Below, in pieces: positions 10,975-29,991 of a DNA stretch of 64,000 nt. Every line of letters starts with the position of its first letter. Positions within the stretch are counted from its first letter, which is position 1. The notes beneath the pieces are model-generated. The model made no database searches, had not been told where the DNA came from, and saw nothing but the letters and a program-made list of their open reading frames with translations. Position numbers and translations under genes: made by a program. The stretch lies in IMG/VR virus record IMGVR_UViG_3300023235_000008, positions 166,060 to 230,059 of that record, one strand, 5' to 3'.

Positions 10975-11597
10975 TGCCGGATTTTAAATATAATATAAGC
11001 CGTGTGTGGTCCACCGCCGAAGCAAAGGCGAAGCCGTGGTCAACCGCAGGGTATATTGCGGTAATTATTGTTAGTTTTTTTGCGTACGTATTATTTGTTA
11101 ATGTATGGTTATTTACACTCAGTGATATGATGTGGTACGGCGATGCATCTTTTGGTCCGCATCCTATGGACGAAAGGTTTCAGGTGTTCACTGCGATTTT
11201 GTCTACGGTGTCATTCGTGGTGTTCTGTGCAACATGGATGTTTACAACAGATAGAGCAAAATTCATCGTTAATCGATTTTCGGCATTTGCAGTCCATTAC
11301 GGAAAACGGGCAATGAAAGATATCAAAAAGGAATGCACGGTGGGTTATGCTAATAACACATTTACATCTCATCATAATCCCCTTTTAGAAAAAATGGCAG
11401 GTATTACAAACATCAACTGCCACCTATTACTTACTCATAATAATACATCACACATGACTATTTTTAAGAAAGATGCGGTTGACGATTATATGATATACGG
11501 ATTTCCAATCGATGGTAAGCTAGAGTTTTGTGTAGAAGGTGAAAAAAATATGTTCTTTTTACAACTTTCCAGTGATATTTTCATTGACAATGGCTAA
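10971..11597 (+). CDS. Hypothetical membrane protein
   Basis: Two hydrophobic segments; ATGA overlap. Confidence 0.6.
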   Translation: MMPDFKYNISRVWSTAEAKAKPWSTAGYIAVIIVSFFAYVLFVNVWLFTLSDMMWYGDASFGPHPMDERFQVFTAILSTVSFVVFCATWMFTTDRAKFIVNRFSAFAVHYGKRAMKDIKKECTVGYANNTFTSHHNPLLEKMAGITNINCHLLLTHNNTSHMTIFKKDAVDDYMIYGFPIDGKLEFCVEGEKNMFFLQLSSDIFIDNG

Positions 11598-11618
11598 TAT
11601 TATGATATTATATAAATA
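11584..11618 (+). promoter_or_regulatory. Overlapping sigma70 (TTGACA..TATTAT) and late (TATAAATA) promoters before arfA
   Basis: TTGACA 11584-89; TATAAATA 11611-18. Confidence 0.6.
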
Positions 11619-11638
11619 TCAAACATTGGAGAAGAACT

Positions 11639-11809
11639 ATGGCAAAGAAAACAATCAAGTATGTATCGAAAGACGAAATCCCTACACTACGTAGCGGAAT
11701 CAATCTTGGCTTGCCTATGTTCCGTAAACGTGTTGAAGCCAAAAAAACTGGCAAAGCAAGCTACACCCGCAATACTAAACATAAGGGTGATGGCAGAAAT
11801 GGCGTTTGA
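11639..11809 (+). CDS. arfA: Alternative ribosome-rescue factor A homolog, 56 aa (not in ORF track)
   Basis: MAKKTIKYVSKDEIPTLRSGINLGLPMFRKRVEAKKTGKASYTRNTKHKGDGRNGV aligns with E. coli ArfA [24 protein letters not shown]; GGAG RBS. Confidence 0.75.
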   Translation: MAKKTIKYVSKDEIPTLRSGINLGLPMFRKRVEAKKTGKASYTRNTKHKGDGRNGV

Positions 11810-11975
11810 AAAAGAAGACTTTTGGAAAGCGTTATGCCAACCCGAAAAACGAACGTGCTTTAACTGCATAAACAAAGAACAATATTCGGCACGTAGAGCG
11901 CCGTGTAATGGTTGTATGAAACAATACCCGAAAACCGTGTTGTGGGAATGGGATGGAAAAACCCATGACATTTAA
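11799..11975 (+). CDS. Cys-rich small protein (CxxC), paralog of 27235-27459
   Basis: FWKAL..CFNC..WEWD shared with 27235-27459. Confidence 0.55.
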   Translation: MAFEKEDFWKALCQPEKRTCFNCINKEQYSARRAPCNGCMKQYPKTVLWEWDGKTHDI

Positions 11976-12300
11976 ACCATCAAAGGCAATAATCAAAAAA
12001 GAAGCAGCGTATATGAATACGGTGCTTTTTGCCGACGAAATACCCAAGTTCGATATTACAATAAAATACTTGACAGGCGCTTGGGCATATTGTATAAAGT
12101 ATACAGATAATACATTCGAGATAGAAATGAATAACAGTTTTCCTACGAAAGAGTTATTCGCAAATGTTCTCGGACATGAAATGGTGCACATATATCAAAT
12201 GACAAACGGCGATTCTGGTAATCACAATAGTTTGTTTTATTCGTTCCGTGATGCATTTTCTGAAAATGGATACCAACTGAAAAGAGTTTACAATGAGTAA
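11965..12300 (+). CDS. SprT-like zinc metallopeptidase domain protein
   Basis: HEMVHIYQ (HExxH) plus GNHNSLF. Confidence 0.7.
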   Translation: MTFKPSKAIIKKEAAYMNTVLFADEIPKFDITIKYLTGAWAYCIKYTDNTFEIEMNNSFPTKELFANVLGHEMVHIYQMTNGDSGNHNSLFYSFRDAFSENGYQLKRVYNE

Positions 12301-12691
12301 TACGTTTGGCGTCGATACAAAAGCTGTTATGTCCGGTATGCGCTTTGTTCGTGCATTGAATAGTGCATATGGTCCTGACCGTGGCATGGAAGTTTTTGAT
12401 AAAATCCGTGAAGTGATGGGCGAAGATGTTGCCCGTGCCATTTTCTTTGCACAACTTTCCTCAAATGTTGGCAACGATATTCGTATCACTAATCCCGGTC
12501 GAGAAAAAATCCAACTTATTAAAGAACTTCGCAACACACTCGGGTGTGGATTGAAAGATGCCAAAGATTATAGTGAAGGCACGAATCGTATCTTGGAATC
12601 ATATTACGAAAAATATGTGGATATGGACAAAGTTATCAATATTCTTGAAACAGCCGCCGACAGTTGGGGCGTCGAGTTCGAATACATATAA
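12293..12691 (+). CDS. Protein with ribosomal L7/L12 C-terminal-like domain
   Basis: KIQLIKELRNTLGCGLKDAKDYSE. Confidence 0.6.
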   Translation: MSNTFGVDTKAVMSGMRFVRALNSAYGPDRGMEVFDKIREVMGEDVARAIFFAQLSSNVGNDIRITNPGREKIQLIKELRNTLGCGLKDAKDYSEGTNRILESYYEKYVDMDKVINILETAADSWGVEFEYI

Positions 12692-12697: not shown

Positions 12698-12725
12698 TTG
12701 ACAAACAAAATGATTGGTGTATAAT
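12698..12725 (+). promoter_or_regulatory. sigma70 promoter (leaderless transcript)
   Basis: TTGACA-16-TATAAT; ATG 7 nt downstream. Confidence 0.7.
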
Positions 12726-12731
12726 ACTCCT

Positions 12732-13445
12732 ATGATCAAGTTTACAGACATTCCAAATACAACGTTTAAAGGTTTCCGAGTATTCGGTGACGTGCATGGC
12801 GAGTTCGACGATATGGTTGAAATCGTTACAGGCGCACTTAACGAAGACTTGTTTCCGATTGGACTAGGCGACTTTACTGATCGTGGTCCAGAATCAGACA
12901 AAGTTATGGCTTATGTATTGATGATGGCACGTAACGGTTTGTTCGCCAGCATCATTGGTAACCACGACGACAAGTTGTGGCGGGCTTTGAACGGCAACAA
13001 TGTTAAAATCAACAACGGGTTGGAATTGACATTAGAGCAGTTGAACAACAACGATGACCGTGAAGGCATCGTTAATGAGTGGTTAACTGCAATGCCCAAT
13101 ATGCCATTGTTTGCTACATTTGACAAATATACTTTTGTTCACGGTTCATTTCATCCTGCGATGTTGACGGCTGACGAGTTGGCATACAAAGATAAAAAAG
13201 GATGGGGCAAAGTTGTTTCCCGTGCAATGTATGGTCAAGTTGATGGATTTCAAGAAAACGGTTACCCTAATCGTATCCACGATTGGGTTGATACTATTCC
13301 CGCTGGACATACAGTGTTCGTCGGTCACGAGGTTGTAGGCGATGTGCCAATAACCAAAACAGGTGCCTTGGGTGGCACGGCGCACTTCTTGGACACTGGT
13401 TCGGGCAAGGGCGGTTCAATCTCATTTATGGACGTGGAGTTTTAA
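12732..13445 (+). CDS. Calcineurin-like metallophosphoesterase (Pnkp phosphatase/PrpA/ApaH type)
   Basis: GDVHG, GDFTDRGP, GNHD, FVHG, VFVGH, LDTG motifs. Confidence 0.85.
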   Translation: MIKFTDIPNTTFKGFRVFGDVHGEFDDMVEIVTGALNEDLFPIGLGDFTDRGPESDKVMAYVLMMARNGLFASIIGNHDDKLWRALNGNNVKINNGLELTLEQLNNNDDREGIVNEWLTAMPNMPLFATFDKYTFVHGSFHPAMLTADELAYKDKKGWGKVVSRAMYGQVDGFQENGYPNRIHDWVDTIPAGHTVFVGHEVVGDVPITKTGALGGTAHFLDTGSGKGGSISFMDVEF

Positions 13446-14278: not shown

Positions 14279-15484
14279 ATGAAATATAACTTTCCACATA
14301 TCAATCACATCAATGATGTCCTTCCACATATCGAAGGTCGTAAAGAGTTCGTTGTGGCAGAACGAGATGGATTTACGGTTATCAACTATGTCGTAATGAC
14401 GCCTGACCTGTTCCCACCAGTTGTTACTGAAGCAGATGCAATACTGCGTGAATGTCGTGGCATCACTTTCTGCAATGAAACGGGCAAAGTCGTAGCTCGA
14501 AAGTTTCACAAGTTCTTTAACGTTGGCGAACGCATGGAAACCGAGTTCCGTAAACTGGATTTAAGTCAGCCACACGTTATTCTTGAAAAGCTTGATGGCT
14601 CAATGATTACGCCGTATCTGCGTGATGGTAAAGTTGAATGGCATACCAAAATGGGCAAGACTGATGTTGCCGATATGGTTATTCCTTTCGTTGAAGCAAA
14701 TCCACAGTATGCTGAACTGGCAGATTTCATATTGCGTAATAATAACGCTACGCCAATATTTGAGTTCTGTTCACGCAAGAATCGTGTTGTGATTGACCAT
14801 CCAGAAGACCGTATGGTATTACTGGCGGTGCGTGATAACGTAACTGGAAAGTATTGGGAATACGAGCTTGGTCTTGAAATCCCAGCTGTAGAATTTAATG
14901 TCGAGTTGGTCGGACAGCATAAAGCAACGTTTGACAAGGATTTCCTTGAATATGTTCGTGGCTTGGTCGGAACTGAAGGGTTCGTTGTGCGCTTTGATGA
15001 TGGGCATATGTTGAAAATCAAAGCAGAGGATTACTTACAGTTACATCGTGCCAAAGAAGGTATCTCTCATGAGAAGAATGTTTGGTCAATGGTCCTCAAT
15101 GAGTCAGTAGATGATTTGAAGTCATTCTTAGATGATGATGACCGTATGCGTGTTGAAGATTTTGAAGTGAAGTTATGGCGTGAAGTTGATTACGCTGTTC
15201 AGCACTTGGAAATGTTCTTCGGATTTGCAATGGATGATTTGAACAAGCGTGACCTATCAATGTTTGAAGATGCTGACCGTGAACGTAAGAAGATGTTTGC
15301 CATGGAATACGCTAATAACTACCGTAAAGAGTTCAAAGGTGTCTTGTTCAGCATGTTTGATGGTGGCGATGTGCGTGACTTGGTTATACAGTTCATTAAG
15401 AGCAACGTATCAACTGGAACTAAGTTGGATGGAATACGTCCGTTGTTTAACAACATTCAGTTTGATGAAAGGGAGTATGAATAA
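14279..15484 (+). CDS. rnl1: RNA ligase 1 (T4 Rnl1 family)
   Basis: ECRG, FHKFFNVGE, EKLDGS (motif I), TPIFE, EGFVV, LKIK. Confidence 0.9.
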   Translation: MKYNFPHINHINDVLPHIEGRKEFVVAERDGFTVINYVVMTPDLFPPVVTEADAILRECRGITFCNETGKVVARKFHKFFNVGERMETEFRKLDLSQPHVILEKLDGSMITPYLRDGKVEWHTKMGKTDVADMVIPFVEANPQYAELADFILRNNNATPIFEFCSRKNRVVIDHPEDRMVLLAVRDNVTGKYWEYELGLEIPAVEFNVELVGQHKATFDKDFLEYVRGLVGTEGFVVRFDDGHMLKIKAEDYLQLHRAKEGISHEKNVWSMVLNESVDDLKSFLDDDDRMRVEDFEVKLWREVDYAVQHLEMFFGFAMDDLNKRDLSMFEDADRERKKMFAMEYANNYRKEFKGVLFSMFDGGDVRDLVIQFIKSNVSTGTKLDGIRPLFNNIQFDEREYE

Positions 15485-15996: not shown

Positions 15997-16171
15997 AGAT
16001 CGAGTTCCTACTACTGCACCCTATGGCGGGATAACTGACGGAAGTGTCTACTGTACTCGATGTGGCGAAGAGAGAACAGGGTGCAGTATGTGTGCTGGTG
16101 AACTCAGGAGTTTGAAAGCAGGGCGATCAACCGCCTACAGATTTTGTATAGGAGATGAAAATGCTAAATAA
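15983..16171 (+). CDS. Zinc-finger-like small protein
   Basis: CTRC...CSMC. Confidence 0.5.
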   Translation: MPNNEDRVPTTAPYGGITDGSVYCTRCGEERTGCSMCAGELRSLKAGRSTAYRFCIGDENAK

Positions 16172-16595
16172 ATTGAAAGATGATGCGTTACAAGCGAGGA
16201 AAGATCGTGATCTTTTTGCTAGTTCACTCAACACGCTTTTGTCTGAAGTAAAGATGAGAGCAAAGAACGATGGCAACCGTGAGCCTAACGACGAAGATGT
16301 GTATAAGATAGCACAGACTACAATGGCTTCGTTGCTCGGTAATCGTGACCTATTGGACACTGCAGGACGTGACACGACTGAAGTAGAACAAGAGATGAAA
16401 GTGATTTCTGCTTACGTTCCTACTGTTATGCCGAAGGAAGAAGTCGAAGGTAAAGTTCAACTTGCTATGCATGAAATCAAACCAGAAGGCATGCAAGATA
16501 TGGGCAAAGTGATGTCATGGCTTAAAGAAAAGTATGGAGCTCGTATTGATATGAAACTGGCCTCTCAGCTTTTCCGGGAGCGATTGAATGGATAA
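16161..16595 (+). CDS. yqeY: YqeY/GatB C-terminal domain protein (tRNA-binding fold)
   Basis: LKDDALQARKDRD..LLSEVK..EPNDEDV..EMKVISAYVP..DMGKVM. Confidence 0.85.
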   Translation: MLNKLKDDALQARKDRDLFASSLNTLLSEVKMRAKNDGNREPNDEDVYKIAQTTMASLLGNRDLLDTAGRDTTEVEQEMKVISAYVPTVMPKEEVEGKVQLAMHEIKPEGMQDMGKVMSWLKEKYGARIDMKLASQLFRERLNG

Positions 16596-17108: not shown

Positions 17109-17567
17109 ATGCCTATGTTATATATGCTAATCGGTGTTCCAGCAAGCGGCAAGTCAACTTGGCTTGAACAAAATGCTGATAGTGGTGTAGTTTTAAGCAC
17201 GGACGCACATATTGACAATGTTGCCGCACAACAGGGCAAGTCATATAACGATGTGTTTGGCGATGCGATTAAAAAAGCCACTGTGAAAATGAATAACGAT
17301 TTAAAGCAAGCGGTTAATCGTGGCGAAGATATCCATTGGGATCAAACCAATCTTACGGTTAAATCTCGTCGTGGCAAGCTACAGAAGGTGCCTGATACGT
17401 ATGAAAAGATTGCGGTAGTATTTCCAACACCCGATGCCGACGAACATCAGCGGCGACTGGATTCACGCCCCGGCAAAACTATTCCACCACATATTTTGAA
17501 GAATATGATGGCAACTTTCCAAATGCCTACCACCGATGAAGGATTTGATAGGATAGTAGTAATATGA
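17109..17567 (+). CDS. Polynucleotide kinase-like P-loop protein (AAA_33)
   Basis: GVPASGKST, STD, WDQTN, RR, IP..I. Confidence 0.85.
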   Translation: MPMLYMLIGVPASGKSTWLEQNADSGVVLSTDAHIDNVAAQQGKSYNDVFGDAIKKATVKMNNDLKQAVNRGEDIHWDQTNLTVKSRRGKLQKVPDTYEKIAVVFPTPDADEHQRRLDSRPGKTIPPHILKNMMATFQMPTTDEGFDRIVVI

Positions 17568-19282: not shown

Positions 19283-19357
19283 CAGGGTGTAGCTCAGTCT
19301 GGCCAGAGTGTCGGTCTTGGAGTCCGAAAGTCGCAGGTTCGAGTCCTGCCACCCTGA
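19283..19357 (+). tRNA. trnP: tRNA-Pro(TGG), CCA not encoded
   Basis: CAGGGTG/CACCCTG acceptor, CT TGG AG loop, TTCGAGT T-loop. Confidence 0.9.
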
Positions 19358-19376
19358 CAGAATACATATAGAGAGA

Positions 19377-19599
19377 ATATGGGCGGGTACGCAACACCGT
19401 AAGTCCCAGAGATTACGTGAGTTAACGGTCCACGCTGACAATCGGGTTCACAGCATGAAATAGGGCAATCGGAATCAACCGTTATCGTCTTTATCTGTTA
19501 TATTATAATAAATGTGAAGACCAATGGAAATCGGTATCACAGATAATATTGCAATAAACTTAATAGTTTCCCAATCGAAGGTGACGATAATATCCATAT
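19377..19599 (+). ncRNA. Structured ncRNA A (shares 18-nt motif with ncRNA B)
   Basis: Terminal stem ATATGG/CCATAT; CGTAAGTCCCAGAGATTA at 19398-19415; nested stems. Confidence 0.55.
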
Positions 19600-19608
19600 A
19601 GATATTTA

Positions 19609-19770
19609 TACTAGGGGCAGCTTAAAGCGTAAGTCCCAGAGATTAGTTACCCCGGTGGTCCTACGGTACGTTGTTTAACCGCTTCGTTATCATGGTCTAG
19701 CGTGGTCGCTAGGGTGAAACAGGCTGGGTAGTAAAATAGTGTGGTAACTATTTGAACCCCGTCCCTAGTA
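19609..19770 (+). ncRNA. Structured ncRNA B
   Basis: Terminal stem TACTAGGG/CCCTAGTA; same 18-mer at 19628-19645; TAGTTACC/GGTAACTA stem. Confidence 0.6.
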
Positions 19771-19782
19771 GCCAAAAGTTTA

Positions 19783-19915
19783 GGATTGGTAGCTGAGAGG
19801 CACAGCGGCACCTTAATGGGTGTGTCGAAACATAAGCACGTAACAAACTCGCCGAGGACGCTCGAACGATAAGGTTACGCCTGTTACGTTGGTTCAAATC
19901 CAACCCAATCCACCA
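19783..19915 (+). tRNA. tRNA-Leu(TAA)-like RNA with ~60-nt extra arm
   Basis: GGATTGG/CCAATCC-A-CCA, intact D and T arms, irregular anticodon loop. Confidence 0.55.
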
Positions 19916-19999
19916 TTTCGCCAAGCGTATCTCGATACTGTCCGAATGCAGTACATAAGCAACGAATGTCGTTGATATTGGGACCGCTACTTTTTTTAA

Positions 20000-20075
20000 T
20001 CCCTACGGGCGAGCAAGCGAACGCACTGGTCTGTTAAACCAGCATTGCCTCGGGCGGTACGAGGGTAGGGAGCCA
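20000..20075 (+). tRNA. trnN: tRNA-Asn(GTT), non-canonical T-loop GGCGGTA
   Basis: TCCCTAC/GTAGGGA-G-CCA; CTGGT CTGTTAA ACCAG. Confidence 0.8.
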
Positions 20076-20086
20076 ATATATATTAT

Positions 20087-20190
20087 CGTGGATGTCAGAA
20101 GCGTTTAAGCTTCGGGTATATTACAACTTTCGTCCCATGGGATGGGTGCCGAAGTGATATATCTGCTGGTGTAAGCCCAGTGCCCACGCC
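20087..20190 (+). ncRNA. tRNA-like RNA with expanded anticodon arm
   Basis: CGTGGAT/GCCCACG stem, GCTGG-TGTAAGC-CCAGT T-arm, GGTATAT/ATATATC stem closing ~35 nt. Confidence 0.4.
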
Positions 20191-20450
20191 TATTTAGTGA
20201 CCGTTACAGACAGGTTTTGGCAACCTCTCATAAGCAATACTAGTAAAAGCTTTGGATGGGGAAACACCAAACGGCACTAATCCAGTTTGCGATAGCTTAA
20301 TAACTCTTGGATAAGCGCACTAAGAGTAAAGCGTCTGGTATTTCGCCAGAAGATGGTAAACGAAAGGAATAATGCATTATTCCAAGTAGTTGCGGCACTG
20401 ACCACCTCGCAAAGCCAAACTTAGGGTAGAAGCAGCATTATGCTCCCCTC
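20191..20450 (+). ncRNA. Multi-stem non-coding RNA candidate
   Basis: No ORF; TTTGCGA/TCGCAAA enclosing several hairpins. Confidence 0.4.
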
Positions 20451-20456
20451 CTTTAT

Positions 20457-20567
20457 TAGCGTGAAAAACGGAGGTATTGCAGTTCGATTCTGCTGATCTT
20501 GTTCGTAAGAAAAATAGTGGTCTGTTGTGGGTAGCACCCAGCCTATGGTTTCGAATCCTTCACGCTA
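20457..20567 (+). ncRNA. tRNA-like RNA with two T-loop arms
   Basis: TAGCGTGAA/TTCACGCTA closing stem; GCAG-TTCGATT-CTGC and GG-TTTCGAAT-CC. Confidence 0.45.
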
Positions 20568-20582
20568 TAGTAAATACCCACA

Positions 20583-20670
20583 CCAGAAGTTGGGCAGGTG
20601 GTGAGCCTCGGGGATTGTAAATCCCTCGCGTATGTATGCTTTAGAAGTTCGATTCTTCTCTTCTGGACCA
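20583..20670 (+). tRNA. trnY: tRNA-Tyr(GTA)
   Basis: CCAGAAG/CTTCTGG-A-CCA; long variable arm. Confidence 0.9.
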
Positions 20671-20698
20671 ATTTTATTTAACAGACTAATTCAAATAA

Positions 20699-20776
20699 CT
20701 TCCCATCGTCTAGTCTGGTTTAGGACGCTGCCCTTTCAAGGCGGAAACACGAGTTCAAATCTCGTTGGGAAGACCA
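20699..20776 (+). tRNA. trnE: tRNA-Glu(TTC)
   Basis: CTTCCCA/TGGGAAG-A-CCA; CT TTC AA. Confidence 0.9.
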
Positions 20777-20781
20777 ATTAA

Positions 20782-20861
20782 GGGGGCAGTGGTCTAAGTC
20801 AGGTTCAAGACGCCGGTATTCCATCATCGGAAACAGTGGTTCAAATCCACTCACCCCGCCA
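20782..20861 (+). tRNA. Degenerate tRNA-like gene with 8-nt anticodon loop (ATTCCATC)
   Basis: D, anticodon and T arms and CCA present; acceptor stem mispaired. Confidence 0.5.
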
Positions 20862-20937
20862 TATTTTGCGGAGCGTTTCCGTGTACCCGCTCCATTTTAT
20901 ATAGAGTTTCTTTGATTGTTTGTGATATAATCAAAGT

Positions 20938-21554
20938 ATGAACACATGTAAAATATGCAATACACAGTTTATCAATAAACCTAAAACAACAGGTCTATAC
21001 TGTTCAATCTCCTGTGGAAATCGCAGTAGAGGAAATAAACTAAGAGAACAAAATAAGACAATCTATGTTCCGTCATCTTGCAAACGCTGCGGTGATGACA
21101 TTCCATATGAAAAAAGACGCAACACATTTTGCTCTAGTAAATGTGCTGCTACAGGAAATACAAACAGAAGGTATCTTCATACATCATATGCAAAGAATGC
21201 AACGAGGCATACAAACCAAGACATTCGGTTTCATACTTTTGTAGCAAGGCATGTGAGATTGAGAATAGGCGAGGGGCTACTGAAAAGAAAATTAAAAAAG
21301 GGGCAGTCAGAGGTCGCCCGACATTAAAAAGATATCTTCTACGAAAGAATGGACACTGCTGTGAAATGTGCAACGGGACGGAATGGATGGGCGAACCTAT
21401 TCCACTCGAACTTGACCATATTAATGGCGATGCGGGTAACAATATGCCCGACAACTTGCGATTATTATGCCCTAACTGCCATACTATAACACCATACTCA
21501 AATGGAAAAAATAGAGGCAATGGTAGAAAATCTCGTGGTGTCCCGCTAAACTAA
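20938..21554 (+). pseudogene. HNH endonuclease with zinc-finger N-terminus, split by a frameshift near 21165-21170
   Basis: ORF 20938 (CxxC/CSxxC) joins ORF 21141 (LELDHINGD..NLRLLCPNCH) if one base is restored. Confidence 0.75.
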
Positions 21555-21558
21555 TAAA

Positions 21559-21633
21559 GCCTCGGTAGCTCAATGGTAGAGCGATGGTGTGAAGTACCAT
21601 GCGTAGGGAGTTCGATTCTCTTTCGAGGCACCA
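21559..21633 (+). tRNA. trnF: tRNA-Phe(GAA)
   Basis: GCCTCGG/TCGAGGC-A-CCA; ATGGT GTGAAGT ACCAT. Confidence 0.85.
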
Positions 21634-21655
21634 TTTCAAAACTATGTTCTTAGGT

Positions 21656-21728
21656 GTGGTCGAAGGCAAACTGGTGAGCCGACAGATTGTGGTTCTGTTG
21701 TTATTGGATTCGAGTTCCAGCGGCCACC
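21656..21728 (+). tRNA. trnH: tRNA-His(GTG), CCA not encoded
   Basis: GTGGTCG/CGGCCAC; ACAGA TTGTGGT TCTGT. Confidence 0.8.
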
Positions 21729-21743
21729 CCTAATAACATATAT

Positions 21744-21820
21744 GCATAGGTGGCGGAAATAGGTACGCACAAGATTGCAAATCTTGACAGATGCTGGTGC
21801 AAGTCCAGTCCTATGCTCCA
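21744..21820 (+). tRNA. trnC: tRNA-Cys(GCA)
   Basis: GCATAGG/CCTATGC-T-CCA (U73). Confidence 0.9.
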
Positions 21821-21869
21821 AAAATTTATCTTGTTGCCGGAACTGGTATACTTGGTATAATAATAATAA

Positions 21870-21944
21870 GGGTATGTAGCTCAAAGGAAGAGCGCCGCTC
21901 TGTCGAAGCGGAGGTTGGGATATCGTAATTCCTCATACTCGCCA
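21870..21944 (+). tRNA. trnD: tRNA-Asp(GTC)
   Basis: GGGTATG/CATACTC-G-CCA; atypical T-loop ATCGTAA. Confidence 0.85.
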
Positions 21945-21954
21945 TTTAAAGAAC

Positions 21955-22089
21955 GTGTCGTGTAGCAGCGACTAGTCGTGGACCCACCCACGATGATGAG
22001 AAGTGGTGTCGCAACCGCAAACAAAGGTCGTACCCGAAGGGTGGCTGTGAAGGCAGCAGTAGATAGATCGGTGGAGTCGCTTATGGCAT
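21955..22089 (+). ncRNA. Structured ncRNA candidate
   Basis: GTGTCGT/ATGGCAT and AGCGACT/AGTCGCT closing stems; internal hairpins. Confidence 0.5.
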
Positions 22090-22113
22090 TGATTCCGAGA
22101 TATTCCTTCTTAA

Positions 22114-22190
22114 TGCGGTGTAGCTTAGTGGCTTAAAGCATTCGGCTCATATCTGAAAGATCGTTGGTTCGAATCCAACCACCGCCACCA
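22114..22190 (+). tRNA. trnM: tRNA-Met/Ile2(CAT)
   Basis: TGCGGTG/CACCGCC-A-CCA; CT CAT AT. Confidence 0.85.
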
Positions 22191-22220
22191 TTTTTTTATA
22201 TACATTTACAGGAAATCATT

Positions 22221-22577
22221 ATGGCTAAACTAGAAAAAGAGGTTATTAAGAACGAAACCGTTTGTGACGTAGATATGACTATCTTTAGCGGATCAACCGT
22301 TGGCGAAGTAGTCGATTATTTTGGGCAATACGAAAGAAGCTTTGAACTCGATGCGTTCTGGGGATACGATGGTATTGAACAGTTACTCATCAAGGATGTC
22401 GAACTCGAAAGCGACGATGATTTTGAAAAGCGTTGCGACGAAGAAGAAAATCGTCTGGAAGAACAACGAAAAATTCGTGAATCAAATAAACGCAAAAAAG
22501 AATTAAAAGAACGTAAGGCTGTAGAAGCCGAAGAAAAGAAACTCCTCAAAGAGTTAAAGAAAAAATACGAACAATAG
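22221..22577 (+). CDS. Hypothetical protein with coiled-coil C-terminus
   Basis: AGGA RBS; stop overlaps tRNA-Gln. Confidence 0.65.
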
Positions 22578-22652
22578 GGGAATAGCACAGCCCGGTAGTG
22601 CGGCACGTTCTGAGCGTGATGGTCGTAGGTTCAAATCCTTCTTCCCCTGCCA
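22576..22652 (+). tRNA. trnQ: tRNA-Gln(CTG)
   Basis: AGGGGAA/TTCCCCT-G-CCA; TT CTG AG. Confidence 0.85.
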
Positions 22653-22661
22653 ACACATTAT

Positions 22662-22737
22662 AGGGCGGTAGCACAATTGGTAGTGCATTGGTTTTTGGTG
22701 CCGAAGGTTGTAGGTTCGAACCCTACCCGCCCTGCCA
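22662..22737 (+). tRNA. trnQ: tRNA-Gln(TTG)
   Basis: AGGGCGG/CCGCCCT-G-CCA; TT TTG GT. Confidence 0.9.
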
Positions 22738-22770
22738 AGATCACACAGTTGACCTTACATTATATGTTAA

Positions 22771-23091
22771 CACTTCGATCCAGCTAATGATACCAAAATA
22801 GTTTCAGGGGCAGCATTCAACTTCGGTGGCCAACGCGGTCGGGCAAGTTTTAAAATAAGCAAAGGAACGCCGAACTCATACGTGATAGTAACTGTTCCTT
22901 CATCATTCACTATTTCAAAAGGTGGCTCTACGTTAACAGTAGACCAACTAACTGTTAGTCCAACTGGTCCGATATTATTGGATAATAAAGGCAAGGGTTT
23001 ATTTTATGTTGGTGGAAGACTTACCATTCCGACCAATCAATCAGGTCAGGCAGGATTAACTGGCGACCTAACAATTTCAATAACAGAATAA
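22771..23091 (+). pseudogene. 5'-truncated DUF4402-like (pilin/spore-coat-U fold) gene fragment
   Basis: Open frame without a start: GRASFKISKGTPNSYVIVTVPSSFTISKGGSTLTVD..FYVGGRLTIPTNQSG..GDLTISITE. Confidence 0.5.
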
Positions 23092-23092
23092 T

Positions 23093-23172
23093 ACTTCCGT
23101 ATACCCTTCCGCTACGAACGGATTGAAAGGTTAGCTGGACACACGTGGGTTCAAATCCTACCGGGAGTGCCA
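23093..23172 (+). tRNA. trnR: Atypical tRNA-Arg(ACG) lacking a normal D-arm
   Basis: ACTTCCG/CGGGAGT-G-CCA; TCCG CTACGAA CGGA; D-loop-like TAGCTGGAC lies 3' of the anticodon arm. Confidence 0.65.
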
Positions 23173-23179
23173 AAACAAT

Positions 23180-23276
23180 GAGGGTGGGGTCTTTAGCTAA
23201 GACGCTGATCTGTTTAATCAGAGATAGTAGGTAAGCATCAATTCTAGAAATGATGCGAATCTTATCACCCTCGCCA
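23180..23276 (+). tRNA. trnN: tRNA-Asn(GTT) with a hairpin inserted in the T-loop
   Basis: GAGGGTG/CACCCTC-G-CCA; GCATCA-ATTCTAGAAA-TGATGC inside the T-loop. Confidence 0.6.
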
Positions 23277-23296
23277 ATTATACAAAGGAAAATATA

Positions 23297-23383
23297 ATGG
23301 AAATAGCAATCGGATCGTTATTAATCGCAGCAGTCGTGGTAATCGGACTGGCAATGTTTCTTTTCTTTAAATCATCTTTTTAA
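23297..23383 (+). CDS. 28-aa single-TM peptide
   Basis: AAGGA RBS; MEIAIGSLLIAAVVVIGLAMFLFFKSSF. Confidence 0.5.
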   Translation: MEIAIGSLLIAAVVVIGLAMFLFFKSSF

Positions 23384-23468
23384 TATACGCCGGGAATATA
23401 ATATAATGTCAAAACTAAGCTAGCCATGGAAACTTGCGCATCCATGGTAGAATTAATCGCTTACTACT

Positions 23469-23546
23469 GGATACGAGCCAACTATTGGTTTGTTGGGGCG
23501 GCCTTTTAACCCGTGTCTATTCTCGGTTCGATTCCGAGCGTATCCT
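23469..23546 (+). tRNA. trnK: tRNA-Lys(TTT), CCA not encoded
   Basis: GGATACG/CGTATCC; CT TTT AA. Confidence 0.8.
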
Positions 23547-23547
23547 C

Positions 23548-23627
23548 GTCTGTCAATATATAGTTACCTCCACGCGGTGACGGATGGAAAAGTTCGATAT
23601 AATATCGAACCTTACTAAATACTATAT
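23548..23627 (+). ncRNA. HDV-like (theta-type) self-cleaving ribozyme 3' of tRNA-Lys
   Basis: P1 GTCTGTC/GACGGAT (G1.U), P2 ATATAGT/ACTATAT, P3 ACC/GGT, L3 TCCACGC, P1.1 GG, P4 hairpin, J4/2 CTAA. Confidence 0.8.
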
Positions 23628-23631
23628 GAAA

Positions 23632-23703
23632 TACACAGTAGCTCAGAGGCAGAGCAGCAGATTGTTAATCCGTAGGTCGTGAGTTCGAGTCCCGCCGCCC
23701 CGT
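23632..23703 (+). pseudogene. tRNA-Asn(GTT) pseudogene (acceptor strands not complementary)
   Basis: D, anticodon and T arms canonical; TACACAG versus CGCCCCG. Confidence 0.6.
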
Positions 23704-23749
23704 TCTCCAGATTATGTTGTCGAGTGGGATTTTGATCCCATTTTTATAT

Positions 23750-23826
23750 AGGGATGTAGTTCAATCCGGTAGAATAGGTGGTTCCAACCCACCCGATGCG
23801 AGTTCAAATCTGCGCCGTCCCTGCCA
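23750..23826 (+). tRNA. trnW: tRNA-Trp(CCA)
   Basis: AGGGATG/CGTCCCT-G-CCA; one extra base in the T-stem. Confidence 0.85.
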
Positions 23827-24090
23827 TTCTCCAATCAGGAAATAAATATTCGAATTTCTTGATTCTTTTGCAGGTAAACGTGTTTTTGAACCTGCCAAAA
23901 ATTAATGTGGCTGACACATAGTATTCCAAAGTTGCCTAAACTCTTCTTTATTTGTAAATGCGGTATCATATGGATGATATAGAAATTCGCAGAATCGCAT
24001 CACATTGCTGTTGTATGGAATATCGAATTATATGGGTTCCGCATCTACTAGTGGTGCATAGTAATTTTTTTTGCATATTATATTTATTCA

Positions 24091-24168
24091 TCTGGGTTGG
24101 CTGATAGGAAAAGCGGCGTCTTGATAAGGCGTGTCATTACATTGGTTCGAATCCAATACCCAGAACCA
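24091..24168 (+). tRNA. trnI: tRNA-Ile(GAT)
   Basis: TCTGGGT/ACCCAGA-A-CCA. Confidence 0.9.
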
Positions 24169-24218
24169 AAATTCGGTATCGCCAACCAATAAATATACAG
24201 TTGATAAGGATTAACATA

Positions 24219-24290
24219 ATGGCTACTTACATAGGGTTAGGTATTATTGGATTAGCTTTTATATGGTTGATTCATACGATACATAAATAA
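24219..24290 (+). CDS. 23-aa single-TM peptide
   Basis: TAAGGA RBS; MATYIGLGIIGLAFIWLIHTIHK. Confidence 0.45.
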   Translation: MATYIGLGIIGLAFIWLIHTIHK

Positions 24291-24297
24291 AGAATAC

Positions 24298-24382
24298 GGA
24301 GGATACCGAGGTTGGCTCCTCAAACGGTCTTGAAAACCGTGGCACCGCAAGGTTGATAGTTCGATGCTATTATCCTCCGCCA
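24298..24382 (+). tRNA. trnS: tRNA-Ser(TGA)
   Basis: GGAGGAT/ATCCTCC-G-CCA; long variable arm. Confidence 0.9.
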
Positions 24383-24399
24383 TTAATGGAATTTGTAAA

Positions 24400-24588
24400 A
24401 TGATTTTTATACCCACTGATAATGTATACAATCGCATTGGCAATACATTCTTTACAACGATTGAAGAAGCGAAAGCGTGTGAACACAAATGCGTATGTGT
24501 ATCAAATGTAGAAGCGATTGATAGAACATTGCGATTTTACAAAAAGATGGGCAACGCAATTATTGCTTGTGATGTTAAAAAAGTTTAA
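24400..24588 (+). CDS. Hypothetical protein
   Basis: ORF after tRNA-Ser. Confidence 0.45.
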   Translation: MIFIPTDNVYNRIGNTFFTTIEEAKACEHKCVCVSNVEAIDRTLRFYKKMGNAIIACDVKKV

Positions 24589-24596
24589 AATACCTG

Positions 24597-24624
24597 TTGA
24601 CATATCCGTTGGATAGTGTATATT
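24597..24624 (+). promoter_or_regulatory. sigma70 early promoter
   Basis: TTGACA-16-TATATT. Confidence 0.65.
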
Positions 24625-24661
24625 CACATTATCAGTTGAACGCAAACAGGAGATTTTGCAA

Positions 24662-25315
24662 ATGAATATGTTTCAAAAAGCACTTGACGAAGCAGTTGTC
24701 GCACCGAAAGCCGCCAAGTCAAAAAAGCCGAGCAAGCCAGAGATTAACGTTGAAGGTATTGCAGTATTCGCAACCGTTGATGCAGTTATCAAAGGGTTGA
24801 CGGGCATTAAGTCCTCACTTGATGGCGAAATCAAAGCAGAAATCGTTGAGAATGCAGTAGCAACCCGTTCCGCAGAAAGCATTACCGGCATCGGCAATGA
24901 CGAAGATGGTGAGGCTATCGCAAGCGCAAACTTACAGTTACGCAAGCGTGTAGCAACTTCCGCACTTAGCGAAACAGAAGTAGCAATGCTTGCCGCTAAC
25001 GGTGTCAGCACACAGGAAGTCGGCGTTGATAGTCAAATCATTATCAACCCAAAATACAAGAACAACGAAAAGTTGCTGACTAAAATTAGCAAAGCACTTG
25101 AAAAAGTGGCTGGTATGCCAGAAGACTTCATTGTTGCCACACCAGAGTCGAAGAAGACTGTTACTACCGAGAACAGCATCAAAGACGCATTGGCGGTTGA
25201 AGATAAAGAAGTGGTTGCACAGTTGTTGGCAATCGTTGCCACCCCGGCAATCAAAGCAACACTGAACGATCCCGATTTGGCAAAAGCACTTGATCGCCTA
25301 AAAGACCTAATCTAA
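24662..25315 (+). CDS. Early hypothetical protein (highly-expressed codon usage)
   Basis: CAGGAG RBS; own promoter and terminator. Confidence 0.75.
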   Translation: MNMFQKALDEAVVAPKAAKSKKPSKPEINVEGIAVFATVDAVIKGLTGIKSSLDGEIKAEIVENAVATRSAESITGIGNDEDGEAIASANLQLRKRVATSALSETEVAMLAANGVSTQEVGVDSQIIINPKYKNNEKLLTKISKALEKVAGMPEDFIVATPESKKTVTTENSIKDALAVEDKEVVAQLLAIVATPAIKATLNDPDLAKALDRLKDLI

Positions 25316-25320
25316 TCCAA

Positions 25321-25348
25321 GCGGGGGTGAAAGCCCCCGTCATTTAGT
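25321..25348 (+). terminator. GC-rich hairpin terminator
   Basis: GCGGGGG-TGAAAG-CCCCCGT. Confidence 0.6.
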
Positions 25349-25350
25349 TG

Positions 25351-25379
25351 TTGACATCGTATAACATATAGTCTACTAT
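25351..25379 (+). promoter_or_regulatory. sigma70 early promoter
   Basis: TTGACA-17-TACTAT. Confidence 0.65.
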
Positions 25380-25417
25380 CTATTTGTAAGTTGATGAACA
25401 CATTAGGAGAGATTCAG

Positions 25418-25600
25418 ATGTCTACCATTTATGACCAAGCTATTCGTGAAGAAATCAAAGCCAATGCACCTTGCTGCCGCAATGGCATCAAACGATTTGG
25501 TGAAGCTAACGCAACAGGTCGTTCCGATGACATTGTATATTGCAGTTGCCCTAAAGGCGTTACAGAAGCCAATAAAATGCCAGCGTGGATGAACAAATGA
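25418..25600 (+). CDS. Small Cys-containing early protein
   Basis: AGGAG RBS. Confidence 0.6.
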   Translation: MSTIYDQAIREEIKANAPCCRNGIKRFGEANATGRSDDIVYCSCPKGVTEANKMPAWMNK

Positions 25601-25827
25601 ACGTTAGTTTCGAAACAACGATTTTGGGCGGGTTGCCGGTTTATGTTCAAGGCAATGTAGCGCCACCAGAACCTGATGTTGGCATCTTTCATTATTATGT
25701 TTATGATTATGAAATCTTCTGGGCAAGTGGTAAAAAACTGCGGAACATTCCAAACTCAATGTATGAGCGTATGACGGAAGACGAGATTGATGATCTGAAA
25801 GAAGAGATTTTAACTTGGGAACCGTAA
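25597..25827 (+). CDS. Hypothetical early protein
   Basis: ATGA overlap. Confidence 0.6.
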   Translation: MNVSFETTILGGLPVYVQGNVAPPEPDVGIFHYYVYDYEIFWASGKKLRNIPNSMYERMTEDEIDDLKEEILTWEP

Positions 25828-25834
25828 ATAGGGT

Positions 25835-25862
25835 TTGACATAATCGCAAAATCTGCTATACT
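25835..25862 (+). promoter_or_regulatory. sigma70 early promoter
   Basis: TTGACA-16-TATACT. Confidence 0.65.
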
Positions 25863-25888
25863 TCAAATATCAGAAACAGGAGATTAAA

Positions 25889-26110
25889 ATGGCTGCAATG
25901 AAAAACAAGATGATGGAAGTTCAAGACGAAGCACGTGAAGCGTTTGACAATGATACCGGTCTTGAAGCTGGTGTTCAATACAAAGGCACCATGTTTGAAG
26001 AAGTTTTTATCGATGCTTTCATTGAACGCCAAAACGAATACATCGCATACCTTGAACAGACTGCCACCATGAATGCCGCAAACGCTGGTTACGAAAATGG
26101 CGGCTGGTAA
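25889..26110 (+). CDS. Hypothetical early protein
   Basis: CAGGAG RBS. Confidence 0.7.
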   Translation: MAAMKNKMMEVQDEAREAFDNDTGLEAGVQYKGTMFEEVFIDAFIERQNEYIAYLEQTATMNAANAGYENGGW

Positions 26111-26324
26111 ATACGATATCACCTTCATCAAGGATGGCGTATCCGATGCGAACAATAACGGTGAACGATTTGATTTGTTCACCGTTCAGTTTAATGGCAA
26201 GCCCATTATGCAACGTGTTCCACATCATTTCGCTGTTTGGGCAGTTGCCGCAATGCGTGAGTTCGATCCACGGGATAATCACGATGCCTATCGCAAAGTG
26301 CAATCAGAGTGTCCATATGATTAG
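26097..26324 (+). CDS. Hypothetical protein
   Basis: Coupled ORF MAAGKYDITF. Confidence 0.55.
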   Translation: MAAGKYDITFIKDGVSDANNNGERFDLFTVQFNGKPIMQRVPHHFAVWAVAAMREFDPRDNHDAYRKVQSECPYD

Positions 26325-26577
26325 AATGATTAAACGAACGATTAAAGGCTGTGGATATGTTCCCGGATATGGAACGCATCCCGGCACCCCCATTATTTGG
26401 TATTTGACGTTCCTTGGCTTTAGTATTAATCTTGTCAACGGGACATTAATGATGGCAATCGTTAGCGCATCCTTAATGCTTATTATTTTTGGCATTCCTT
26501 ATCTATGGAGTGCGCACGAAAGAGCAGTAGATGGCGAAAAAGATTTCATCAGGGGATTGACAAAAGAATACAAGTAA
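26317..26577 (+). CDS. Membrane protein
   Basis: Hydrophobic segments. Confidence 0.55.
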   Translation: MIRMIKRTIKGCGYVPGYGTHPGTPIIWYLTFLGFSINLVNGTLMMAIVSASLMLIIFGIPYLWSAHERAVDGEKDFIRGLTKEYK

Positions 26578-26585
26578 GGTAGTAT
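26557..26585 (+). promoter_or_regulatory. sigma70 promoter (leaderless transcript)
   Basis: TTGACA-17-TAGTAT; ATG 7 nt downstream. Confidence 0.6.
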
Positions 26586-26591
26586 CTTATT

Positions 26592-27245
26592 ATGAAATAT
26601 GAAACATTCAATTACTGCTTTCCCGGTCGCCCACGTAAAGCGATTGCCCCAGCATTCCTAAACTTTCACGAAAAGCGTGGATGGGTAGGTCAATACAAAA
26701 AGAATGGAACGTGTAACGTTTTGTTTGTATCGCCTGATAAAGAAGTCACGGCTATGACACGACATAACGATACCCACAAACTTTGGACACCCACAGAAGC
26801 TTCTACTGGACTACTCCGCACAGTACCCGGCAATGGCTGGTGGGTGTTTAATGCCGAACTACTACACAGTAAATCACAGGCTGGACCGACCGATACCAAC
26901 TATCTATTCGATGTTCAAGTCGCCGATGGTGAAGTATTACTAGACAAAACATTTGCTGAACGTATTAAGATTATGGAAGACCTATTCTTGAAAGAGGATT
27001 CCGTCGAAGAATATAGCCATTACGTGGTAGGTGAGCGTGTATGGCTTGCTAAGACCATCACAGAGGGGTTTAAAGACAAATGGGACGAAGCAGATAGAGT
27101 TGCAAAAACACTCGATACTTCGCCTACCGATGAAGGATTGGTGTTGAAAAATCCAAAGGCAGTTTTGAAGCCACCGTTTTCAGCAGATTCAAATGCGGCA
27201 TGGCAAGTCAAATGTCGGGTGGCACACACAAACTATGCATTCTGA
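26592..27245 (+). CDS. Stand-alone ATP-dependent ligase/capping-enzyme nucleotidyltransferase domain
   Basis: QYKKNG (motif I), NAELL, YLFDV, EGLVLK, QVKCR; no OB domain. Confidence 0.75.
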   Translation: MKYETFNYCFPGRPRKAIAPAFLNFHEKRGWVGQYKKNGTCNVLFVSPDKEVTAMTRHNDTHKLWTPTEASTGLLRTVPGNGWWVFNAELLHSKSQAGPTDTNYLFDVQVADGEVLLDKTFAERIKIMEDLFLKEDSVEEYSHYVVGERVWLAKTITEGFKDKWDEADRVAKTLDTSPTDEGLVLKNPKAVLKPPFSADSNAAWQVKCRVAHTNYAF

Positions 27246-27459
27246 TAAAAAAGAGTTTTGGGACGCATTAAAGTATCCATCTGAAAAAGGATGCTTTAAC
27301 TGTAAACATAGGGTAGGAACGTCAGTTGAAAATACGTGTTGGCGCTGGTTGTCAGCGGCACCCGAAGCACGGTGCAGTATTACTGAAAAGCGGGGTGGCA
27401 CATCTCGGCTGTATCCATTTTGGGAATGGGATGAAGGATTGAAATGTGACATATTTTAG
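27235..27459 (+). CDS. Cys-rich small protein, paralog of 11799-11975
   Basis: EFWDAL..CFNC..WEWD. Confidence 0.55.
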   Translation: MHSDKKEFWDALKYPSEKGCFNCKHRVGTSVENTCWRWLSAAPEARCSITEKRGGTSRLYPFWEWDEGLKCDIF

Positions 27460-27488
27460 TTGACATCCGCATTCCGCCATGGTATAAT
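27460..27488 (+). promoter_or_regulatory. sigma70 promoter
   Basis: Perfect TTGACA-17-TATAAT. Confidence 0.75.
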
Positions 27489-27498
27489 AAATACTGTA

Positions 27499-27756
27499 AT
27501 GAAAGATATAAAAGAAGCACGGATTTGCCGTGAACAAGAGTTTTATGCTAAGTGTGGCGAACTCTTAGGATTGGAACATAAATATGTTGTTCCGTATAAA
27601 AGAAAAACACGTTGGAACCAACGCAATCCCGGTAACGGTAGATACAAAGGTTTCGGCGTAATAAGATATTTTAACGAAGCGAATATACACGTTATGTGTC
27701 GAAAGGGTTCAAAAACCTTTACCAATGTCGATGCAGTATATGAATGGCTTCAGTGA
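27499..27756 (+). CDS. Hypothetical protein
   Basis: RWNQRNPGNGRY.GFG. Confidence 0.6.
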   Translation: MKDIKEARICREQEFYAKCGELLGLEHKYVVPYKRKTRWNQRNPGNGRYKGFGVIRYFNEANIHVMCRKGSKTFTNVDAVYEWLQ

Positions 27757-27923
27757 GCGAGTGTGGTGAAATTGGTAAACACGCCAGATTTATGAGAGTC
27801 TCCGTTATAGGCTCCAATCTACAAGTTAGATTGTTTGGGGAACCGAGAAGGCTAAACCTTCAAAGTTCAAATCAGGTTCTGGTGCCGAAAGGTTTGGAGG
27901 TTCAAGTCCTCTCACTCGTACCA
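27757..27923 (+). tRNA. trnL: tRNA-Leu(TAG) with an 82-nt structured insert in the anticodon (27793-27874)
   Basis: Removing the insert restores CCAGA TT TAG GT TCTGG; the rest is a perfect Leu cloverleaf with A73-CCA. Confidence 0.85.
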
Positions 27924-27929
27924 AAATAA

Positions 27930-28005
27930 CGTAGGGTGGAGCAGTGGTCAGCTCGTGAGTCTCATAAACTCAAGGTCGGGGGTTCGAATCCCCCCCCTGC
28001 AACCA
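27930..28005 (+). tRNA. trnfM: Initiator tRNA-fMet(CAT)
   Basis: C1.A72 mismatch; CT CAT AA; CCA. Confidence 0.8.
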
Positions 28006-28048
28006 AAATATACAACGATAAATACTATTATCAAAAAGGAGAAAAGCA

Positions 28049-28240
28049 ATGATGATCGTAGGTTATCGTTCAAACGTAAACGCCGCAGAGGGCGTAAGAG
28101 CAGTAGTTAAACACACAGGTAAGCCAGTCGGCGAGGCACGTAAACTAATCGATTCTGCAATCGGTGGACAATCAGTTTTATTCGATTCAGATTGGGTATT
28201 ACGTGAAGACCTCGAAGACAATGGATTTATCATAGACTAA
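28049..28240 (+). CDS. Small protein, weak L7/L12 CTD-like helix motif
   Basis: AAGGAG RBS; VRAVVKHTGKPVGEARKLID. Confidence 0.6.
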   Translation: MMIVGYRSNVNAAEGVRAVVKHTGKPVGEARKLIDSAIGGQSVLFDSDWVLREDLEDNGFIID

Positions 28241-28245
28241 AAAAT

Positions 28246-28320
28246 GCGGATATAGCTCAGAGGCAGAGCAGAAGGTTTCCAACCTTCGTGTCGGGATTTC
28301 GAAATTCCCTATCCGCTCCA
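28246..28320 (+). tRNA. trnG: tRNA-Gly(TCC)
   Basis: GCGGATA/TATCCGC-T-CCA. Confidence 0.9.
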
Positions 28321-28426
28321 ACAAAGCAAAAGCGCTTCACGTTCAATAGTGATGCTCCTTATTTTGATTAAGTTCAAGCCTTCGGGTCATAGGGGTTATA
28401 TACTGGCTAAAGTTGAACATAGTTTC

Positions 28427-28502
28427 GGGGTATTAGCTCATCGGGGAGAGCACGACGTTAGCACGGTCGAGGTGGTAGGTTCGAGTCCTTGTTGGCCCAC
28501 CA
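28427..28502 (+). tRNA. Degenerate tRNA-Ala-like gene, anticodon AGC
   Basis: TT AGC AC loop; mispaired acceptor and T stems; CCA. Confidence 0.55.
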
Positions 28503-28508
28503 ATATAT

Positions 28509-28585
28509 AGTTGCGTAGCATAACTGGCGAATGCCGACTCCTCATAAGAGTTTTTATTCTGGTTCGAATCCAGACGTGACTACCA
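28509..28585 (+). tRNA. trnI: tRNA-Ile2/Met(CAT)
   Basis: AGTTGCG/CGTGACT-A-CCA; CT CAT AA. Confidence 0.8.
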
Positions 28586-28623
28586 AAATAAAAGGCGCAG
28601 GAACACGTTCCATAAATATATGT

Positions 28624-29321
28624 ATGAAAAGTATGTTTGAAGAAAACCCCGTTTATCGGGATGGATGGGAATATGATGATAATATCAAAGCCAATAAAGT
28701 AGTATATGCTATTGGATGCAGTTGGATACATTATAGTTGGTTCACTCGGGTACACGCTCTAAAATATCCAGACACCCTTCTTATCAATAGGTCATTCGGC
28801 GGTCATGGAAATAGTATGATTATAGACACGGTAAAACGTGAATATGATCTAATGCAAAAGTTTGATGATATATATTTTATAGTTTGTTTCTCCGAAGTAG
28901 GTAGAAATATCAAAGACTTTTCATATCAAAATCCAAAAAATTACAACGGTGTTCAAGAATATGAAAAAGCAATACTATACAATCAGATGGAATGCATTGA
29001 TCAGTTTCTCGGCAATGAACAAAGGTTTATAACAACCAGTTTCGTCAGTAATCCATATAATAATAATAAGCGTATTATTGACTTCTGTGAAAAGACATAT
29101 GATCAACCATGCGAAAGTTATACAGCTGCACCGGTGCATTCGAATACCTCAAAGATAGAAATAAGGTGTTCGATTTTGATTTGAATACATTAAGCAACGA
29201 CTTAGAGGATTGTATTAAATATATCGATTGGATGAATAGCCACAAACACATAGAAAATAATCACGCATTTGGATTCACGCCATATGAAAGTTTTATAGAT
29301 TATTTTTATCATGATAAATAA
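28624..29321 (+). pseudogene. SGNH-hydrolase-like gene split by a frameshift near 29115-29120
   Basis: AIGCSW and NRSFGGHGN blocks; continues in the frame of ORF 29109-29321. Confidence 0.5.
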
Positions 29322-29413
29322 TAATACACCTTGAACGGACCCGTAATGTTGGATGGGCCGCGCCCCTTGAGGTTTTCTAAGGCTCAATCGCCAACACGAA
29401 AGAGTTACAAAAT

Positions 29414-29512: not shown

Positions 29513-29527
29513 ATTCCTAAAATATTA

Positions 29528-29664: not shown

Positions 29665-29674
29665 AAAGAATAAA

Positions 29675-29985: not shown

Positions 29986-29991
29986 ATTGTA

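Follow-up and report, generated by a model that had tools for sequence, protein, structure and literature searches.

A candidate ArfA ribosome-rescue gene in a jumbo phage and a large group of short phage relatives that appear to lack the bacterial non-stop control

In the literature ArfA is described as a bacterial back-up that is switched on only when tmRNA fails, and off the ribosome the peptide is disordered. The E. coli gene encodes 72 residues and the protein is made from an mRNA that is cut at a hairpin; the active form is 17-18 residues shorter at its C-terminus, order on the ribosome extends over 46-48 residues, and a form cut down to 40 residues has no activity (PMC8012679). Because the bacterial mRNA is cut inside the hairpin, tmRNA keeps arfA off. 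On the ribosome, E. coli ArfA contacts RF2 through F25 and the Q27-E30 beta-strand, its basic residues bind the mRNA channel, and a KH motif anchors in a pocket of that channel (PMC8012679). The segment around A18 orders on RF2 and opens it, and the A18T substitution alone kills the protein, which then binds and recruits RF2 without activating it (PMC8012679). Two other small release-factor-dependent rescue peptides, BrfA of Bacillus and ArfT of Francisella, likewise place a basic tail in the mRNA channel, and BrfA shares the KH motif with ArfA, but no homology to ArfA is detectable in the sequence of either; BrfA, too, is synthesised from a non-stop mRNA. For phages, a literature search yielded one sentence on ArfA, in the paper on phage RXM (PMC8953757), and no functional study of a phage ArfA, and ArfA goes unmentioned in a wide-ranging survey of RNA repair and ribosome rescue in jumbo phages.

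Here we describe a candidate arfA gene in the final 64 kb (hereafter the window) of a 230-kb IMG/VR virus record, which is judged to be about 65% complete and therefore to come from a jumbo phage. Salt-lake metagenomes contain DNA of this arfA-carrying phage. The genome has no close cultured relative, and a phage collection searched with the window DNA and with the 56-aa protein gave no match. An initial annotation, made from the sequence, had proposed a 56-aa open reading frame with an ArfA-like core, and both the frame and the quoted core are present (Table 1). The 3' end of the frame overlaps the following Cys-rich gene by 20 nt.

Table 1. Features of the arfA-like locus, in window coordinates.
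Feature	Position	Strand	Evidence
Sigma-70-type promoter-like site (TTGACA, 16 nt, TG-extended TATTAT)	11584..11611	+	11/12 consensus positions
TATAAATA, proposed earlier as a late promoter	11611..11618	+	motif present
Ribosome-binding site GGAG, 7 nt 5' of ATG	11628..11631	+	sequence reading; kept in relative
arfA-like gene, 56 aa, ATG to TGA	11639..11809	+	ORF reading, Pfam, PDB chains, P0003
Cys-rich 61-aa gene, no family	11790..11975	+	no Pfam match
Weak hairpin across stop codon	11799..11835	+	-10.7 kcal/mol, z -2.2
SprT-like metallopeptidase candidate, 115 aa	11953..12300	+	Pfam SprT-like 21 bits, below cut-off
132-aa protein with ribosomal L7/L12 C-terminal domain	12293..12691	+	PF00542 32.3 bits vs 25.9; NCBIfam L12 E 6e-5
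Calcineurin-type metallophosphoesterase	12714..13445	+	Pfam Metallophos 46.5 bits
T4 Rnl1-type RNA ligase	14279..15484	+	Pfam RNA_lig_T4_1 102 bits
YqeY-like protein	16161..16595	+	Pfam YqeY 72 bits
AAA_33 / KTI12-type kinase (polynucleotide-kinase-like)	17109..17567	+	Pfam AAA_33 63 bits
17 tRNA genes, clustered	19283..31443	+	ARAGORN; only tRNAs in 230 kb

Several searches connect the protein to ArfA. Against the Pfam ArfA profile (PF03889) it scores 26.1 bits for a cut-off of 25.5, a borderline positive that covers only profile positions 21-44, the C-terminal half; a whole-genome Pfam scan scores the same match at 25.3 to 25.8 bits. NCBIfam and PHROGs gave no useful match. E. coli ArfA chains from ribosome structures in the PDB match phage residues 23-52 (E = 5.6e-4). 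An exhaustive search of 1.84 billion protein representatives found four proteins, among them P0003, a Pfam-positive bacterial ArfA of 63 aa from a metagenomic bacterial contig (L024) that is 61% identical over 44 residues (E = 1.5e-6) and whose core is almost identical to that of the phage protein. Among the 100 nearest clusters in the ESM Atlas, 74 belong to the ArfA-carrying set, while a word-based protein search returned the protein itself and one close relative only.

The conserved residues are those through which ArfA makes its contacts. In an alignment with the E. coli protein (A1), the phage protein keeps the equivalents of F25, R26, R28, V29, E30 and G35 as well as those of K36, S38, Y39, R41, K44 and H45. 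The RF2-docking elements are in place, with phage F28 and K30-R31-V32-E33 aligned gap-free to F25 and Q27-E30. The KGKGS-type motif reads KTGKASY-x-R, which amounts to two substitutions, and is followed by KH at residues 47-48; with both motifs present and a product of more than 40 residues, the basic tail would be long enough to fill the mRNA channel. Phage and E. coli proteins share the order F-R-x-R-V-E, then K-x-G-K-x-S-Y-x-R, then KH, an active-form length of about 55 aa and, presumably, the mechanism of mRNA-channel sensing and RF2 recruitment. Judged from these comparisons the match to ArfA is more than chance, and membership in the family, as first annotated, is supported by the agreement of Pfam, the PDB chains, P0003 and the conserved contact residues.

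A comparison between two phage lineages indicates that the frame is a real gene. The relative, P0002 (55 aa, contig L002), is 87% identical to the window protein and is encoded at the equivalent site in syntenic surroundings. Counted over the first 50 codons, the pair of genes shows 18 synonymous substitutions and 6 non-synonymous ones (dN/dS of about 0.055), and the N-terminal third is as well conserved between the lineages as the remainder. By this measure the arfA-like frame is under strong purifying selection and is a functional coding gene. Further relatives were sought in viral and genome contigs with tblastn, which confirmed none at a threshold too strict for a 56-aa query, and by scanning the genome contigs for the signature PMFRKRVE, which gave 13 spurious matches and no ArfA.

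Upstream of the gene, the initial annotation had placed an early promoter, a late promoter and a ribosome-binding site. The putative early promoter is a good match to the sigma-70 consensus, and the relative has a promoter-like site of its own at the equivalent position; the ribosome-binding site is likewise found in both phages. The late promoter is not supported. The motif TATAAATA occurs at 8 sites in the window against 7.1 expected, which is no enrichment, and the relative reads TGTAAATA at the position of TATAAATA upstream of arfA, the exact motif not being kept. A search of the 230 kb (about 65% of the genome) detected no Sigma70_r2 gene, and the pairing that marks T4-type late transcription, a motif enriched 5' of genes plus a late sigma factor from the phage, is not seen here. 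Promoter-like sites are frequent in this region as a whole, with 18 between 10500 and 13500 against 10 expected, and a perfect sigma-70 consensus (TTGACA, 16 nt, TATAAT) lies at 12698-12725 (+), directly 5' of the phosphoesterase gene.

The 3' end is where the phage gene departs from its bacterial counterparts. The phage product ends at a position aligned to about E. coli residue 53, and so, by the alignment, it ends where active truncated E. coli ArfA ends. The relative gene stops at the same position with TAA and the window gene with TGA; because the same end is kept with a different stop codon, the position of the end is selected. The TAA of the relative also rules out read-through of the TGA in arfA. 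To compare RNA structure, we folded 141 nt around the 3' ends of four genes, with E. coli arfA and P0003 as the only two bacterial controls for length and hairpin. The E. coli end folds at -42.6 kcal/mol (z -4.06) and that of P0003 at -47 kcal/mol (z -6.98), with a 25+6 bp stem directly after the KH codons; the values are -33.5 kcal/mol (z -1.96) for the window gene and -32.3 kcal/mol (z +0.61) for its relative. The hairpin across the window stop codon is far weaker than the bacterial hairpins and is absent in the relative. P0003 differs from the phage protein, whose core it otherwise shares, in retaining both this hairpin and a hydrophobic tail; the window gene and its relative have no hydrophobic C-tail. 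Compared with E. coli arfA, the phage gene thus has a real stop codon and lacks both the internal RNase III/terminator hairpin and the hydrophobic tail. A hairpin within the frame and a hydrophobic tail, the two features of synthesis from non-stop mRNA, are regulatory and not catalytic. On these comparisons the bacterial hairpin that makes arfA mRNA non-stop is missing from the phage gene, and the loss of the bacterial non-stop control is supported. The short, stop-terminated and tail-less architecture first proposed for the gene is borne out by the conserved stop, the missing tail and the want of any conserved hairpin.

The initial annotation had treated the gene as exceptional, and this view has to be given up. 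Using E. coli ArfA as a tblastn query against 50,697 phage records, we find stop-terminated ArfA-like ORFs of 40-60 aa in seven isolated phages; an eighth match is to an unverified Pseudomonas record. Two of them carry an ArfA annotation already: that of Pseudoalteromonas phage J2-1, which is without KGKGS, and that of Citromicrobium phage RXM, whose tail is longer and partly hydrophobic. The ORF of Salmonella phage Arash adjoins four tRNA genes and is 63% identical to E. coli ArfA over residues 4-41. For Pseudomonas phage pf16 and Ralstonia jumbo phage RsoM2USA, the ORF lies on a strand without an annotated gene at that place. Erythrobacter phage XM05 and Roseobacter phage CRP-212 complete the set, the latter with its ORF inside an annotated gene. 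Around the stop codon, notable structure is seen in XM05 (z -3.6) and in none of the other six. Like the window gene these ORFs are short and stop-terminated, but most retain the exact KGKGS and a canonical N-terminus, and none was found adjoining RNA-repair genes. The CRP-212 ORF is a clear 41-aa frame (L021:2989-3114) within the annotated 3' end of the large gene gp38, and is either an overlapping gene or a sign that the end of gp38 is mis-annotated; near-identical ORFs occur in IMG/VR (L158, L206 and L242).

Motif scans extend the group considerably. Two scans of IMG/VR for KKGKGSY-x-R gave more than 116 and more than 120 loci, or more than 230 together, counts that are approximate because some of the contigs may be host DNA; a rough estimate of the chance expectation is a handful. 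Our analysis covered 226 complete open frames among the matches listed. Most of these listed ORFs are 40-69 aa long and reach a stop 5-15 residues past the motif. Positions that were not selected by the scan also look like ArfA in the listed ORFs, with F/Y at -8 in 47%, K/R at -7 in 65% and V/I at -4 in 78%, and nine of ten sampled ORFs pass the Pfam ArfA cut-off. A strong hairpin (z < -4) was found at only 6 of 148 distinct loci listed, with a median z of -0.6. Eleven listed loci have a tRNA gene no more than 1 kb away, and some of them sit inside clusters of 6-23 tRNAs. Six IMG/VR loci (L074, L084, L085, L104, L105 and L114) have longer ORFs of about 104-126 aa, in which an ArfA-like N-terminal segment that includes KKGKGSY is joined to a conserved, Gly- and Lys-rich domain of about 70 residues at the C-terminus; these look like a fusion form of phage ArfA. 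As far as these searches can tell, the window gene belongs to a large phage group that has hardly been studied, and is a variant of ArfA without the bacterial self-limiting control.

Another claim of the initial annotation concerned location, and arfA does adjoin RNA-repair genes and the 17-tRNA cluster (Table 1). The phosphoesterase, the Rnl1-type ligase and the kinase, all within 5 kb (12714-17567, +), plausibly form a heal-and-seal set. T4-type RNA repair, in which Pnkp and Rnl1 act against anticodon nucleases, resembles this arrangement in having a kinase/phosphoesterase/Rnl1 set beside tRNA genes, but the phosphoesterase here is calcineurin-type, and the target of ArfA is the ribosome and not an RNA end; the link between the phage ArfA and these genes is one of proximity only. 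A general association of arfA with RNA repair was rejected, since a tblastn search with the module proteins against the 226 viral arfA loci gave only two SprT-like matches (L170 and L220). The protein with the L7/L12 domain has an unrelated N-terminal half and is kept in most related contigs, two genes after arfA. At its other end, the window starts inside a 4367-codon ORF (1-4000, -) that reaches upstream to G000:C1:156956, and this is followed by a 1163-aa DUF8360 gene (4000-7491, -) and then a gp25-like baseplate gene.

We propose, as the most likely function and one that we hold to be probable, that the gene encodes a constitutive ArfA for tmRNA-independent, RF2-dependent rescue of non-stop ribosomes during infection. 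From the sequence we infer ribosome binding, RF2 dependence, constitutive expression and a benefit to the phage. On a ribosome that has run to the 3' terminus of a broken mRNA, the C-terminal half of the peptide, which is basic and contains the KTGKASY and KH motifs, would thread into the empty 30S mRNA channel and the FRKRVE segment would contribute a beta-strand to host RF2; RF2 would then cleave the nascent chain off the tRNA, and the ribosome would be recycled. Because the phage gene ends at a normal stop codon, any transcription of the gene would yield the peptide, irrespective of the tmRNA state, and the apparent sigma-70 promoter suggests transcription early in infection. Ribosomes would in this way stay available while mRNAs are cut, be it by phage-driven decay of host mRNA or by RNA-cleaving defences of the host, and a counter-defence role is plausible. 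Since ArfA requires the mRNA to be cut no more than about 3 nt from the P site (PMC8012679), it would give no direct relief of stalls caused by tRNA cleavage.

The N-terminal segment is the part of the protein that least resembles E. coli ArfA. It is shortened and diverged around A18, where alignment A1 has a 2-residue gap, and it shows little identity to the E. coli sequence, and yet it is strongly conserved between both phage lineages. Given that the A18T form of E. coli ArfA retains binding and RF2 recruitment but not RF2 activation, a diverged activating segment with a gap at this very position could mean that the peptide is an ArfA-derived blocker, which would bind ribosomes with an empty channel, and perhaps RF2, without activating hydrolysis, and so deny tmRNA-SmpB or host ArfA access to stalled ribosomes, or sequester RF2. 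We regard this as unlikely. The N-terminus is naturally variable across the family, and the A18 position itself varies among the phage ArfA-like ORFs; other phage ArfAs, that of Arash for example, have a canonical N-terminus. Moreover, the neighbouring genes (tRNAs, the L12-like protein, RNA repair) all support translation, and locked ribosomes would hurt translation of the phage's own genes too.

A different partner for the peptide can also be considered. An RF1-like protein lacking domain 1, with PCRF and RF-1 domains, is also encoded by this phage, and this protein, instead of host RF2, might be what the phage ArfA recruits. We think this less likely still, as none of the five isolated ArfA-carrying phages examined has an RF-1 domain gene, about 57 kb separate arfA from the RF1-like gene, and the contacts of ArfA F25 are described as RF2-specific. 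The RF1-like gene, which lies outside the window (G000:C1 about 120186-120884; L040:1174-1872, +), is unusual in its own right. Its product has PxT and GGQ, and codon 36 is an in-frame TGA at a position that is Trp in full-length relatives (232-233 aa). The sequence GGT-TGA-A also occurs in two other phage contigs (L277 and L278) that are about 65% identical, and most of the best 120 RF1-like homologues are 155-193 aa long, the length expected from a start called after the TGA. Elsewhere in the genome TGA is a normal stop that terminates 91 of 290 ORFs, and genome-wide recoding is rejected on this count, because no suppressor tRNA was found and because single-TGA junctions are not in excess. 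The TGA of the RF1-like gene may be a programmed UGA read-through site that senses RF2 activity. In the phage tRNA-Trp(CCA) at 23750-23826 (+), the D-stem position that corresponds to 24 is A, against G in E. coli trpT; G24A is the classical Hirsh UGA suppressor, and the phage tRNA might help to read the in-frame TGA.

The least probable of the alternatives to RF2-dependent rescue is a small basic protein with no part in ribosome rescue, such as another nucleic-acid-binding protein or the product of a captured gene in decay. In its favour are the very small size, the richness in lysine and arginine and the borderline Pfam score; against it, the conserved residues are specifically those of the ArfA contacts, correctly spaced, purifying selection is strong, and the exhaustive search gave a significant match to a bacterial ArfA.

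Returning to ArfA-mediated rescue, phages appear routinely to carry the active part of ArfA without the tmRNA switch. More tentatively, and as an idea we would not yet back over its alternatives, a short ArfA free of tmRNA control could be a very widespread, so far unrecognised phage tool, made at all times, that frees ribosomes while mRNAs are being cut, either by RNA-targeting defences of the host or by the phage's own host shut-off. In the phage described here it would act within a translation-takeover set, which may comprise the L12-like protein, the RNA repair enzymes, the 17 tRNAs and the RF1-like factor, whose synthesis would depend on UGA read-through. Salmonella phage Arash, Pseudomonas phage pf16 and Ralstonia phage RsoM2USA are among the carriers that can be grown in culture, which makes the idea directly testable. 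If phages do routinely carry ArfA without this switch, their minimal, constitutively expressed versions would offer a natural collection in which to study the recruitment and activation of RF2, and ribosome rescue would be a resource that phages supply themselves and a new point of conflict with RNA-cleaving defences.
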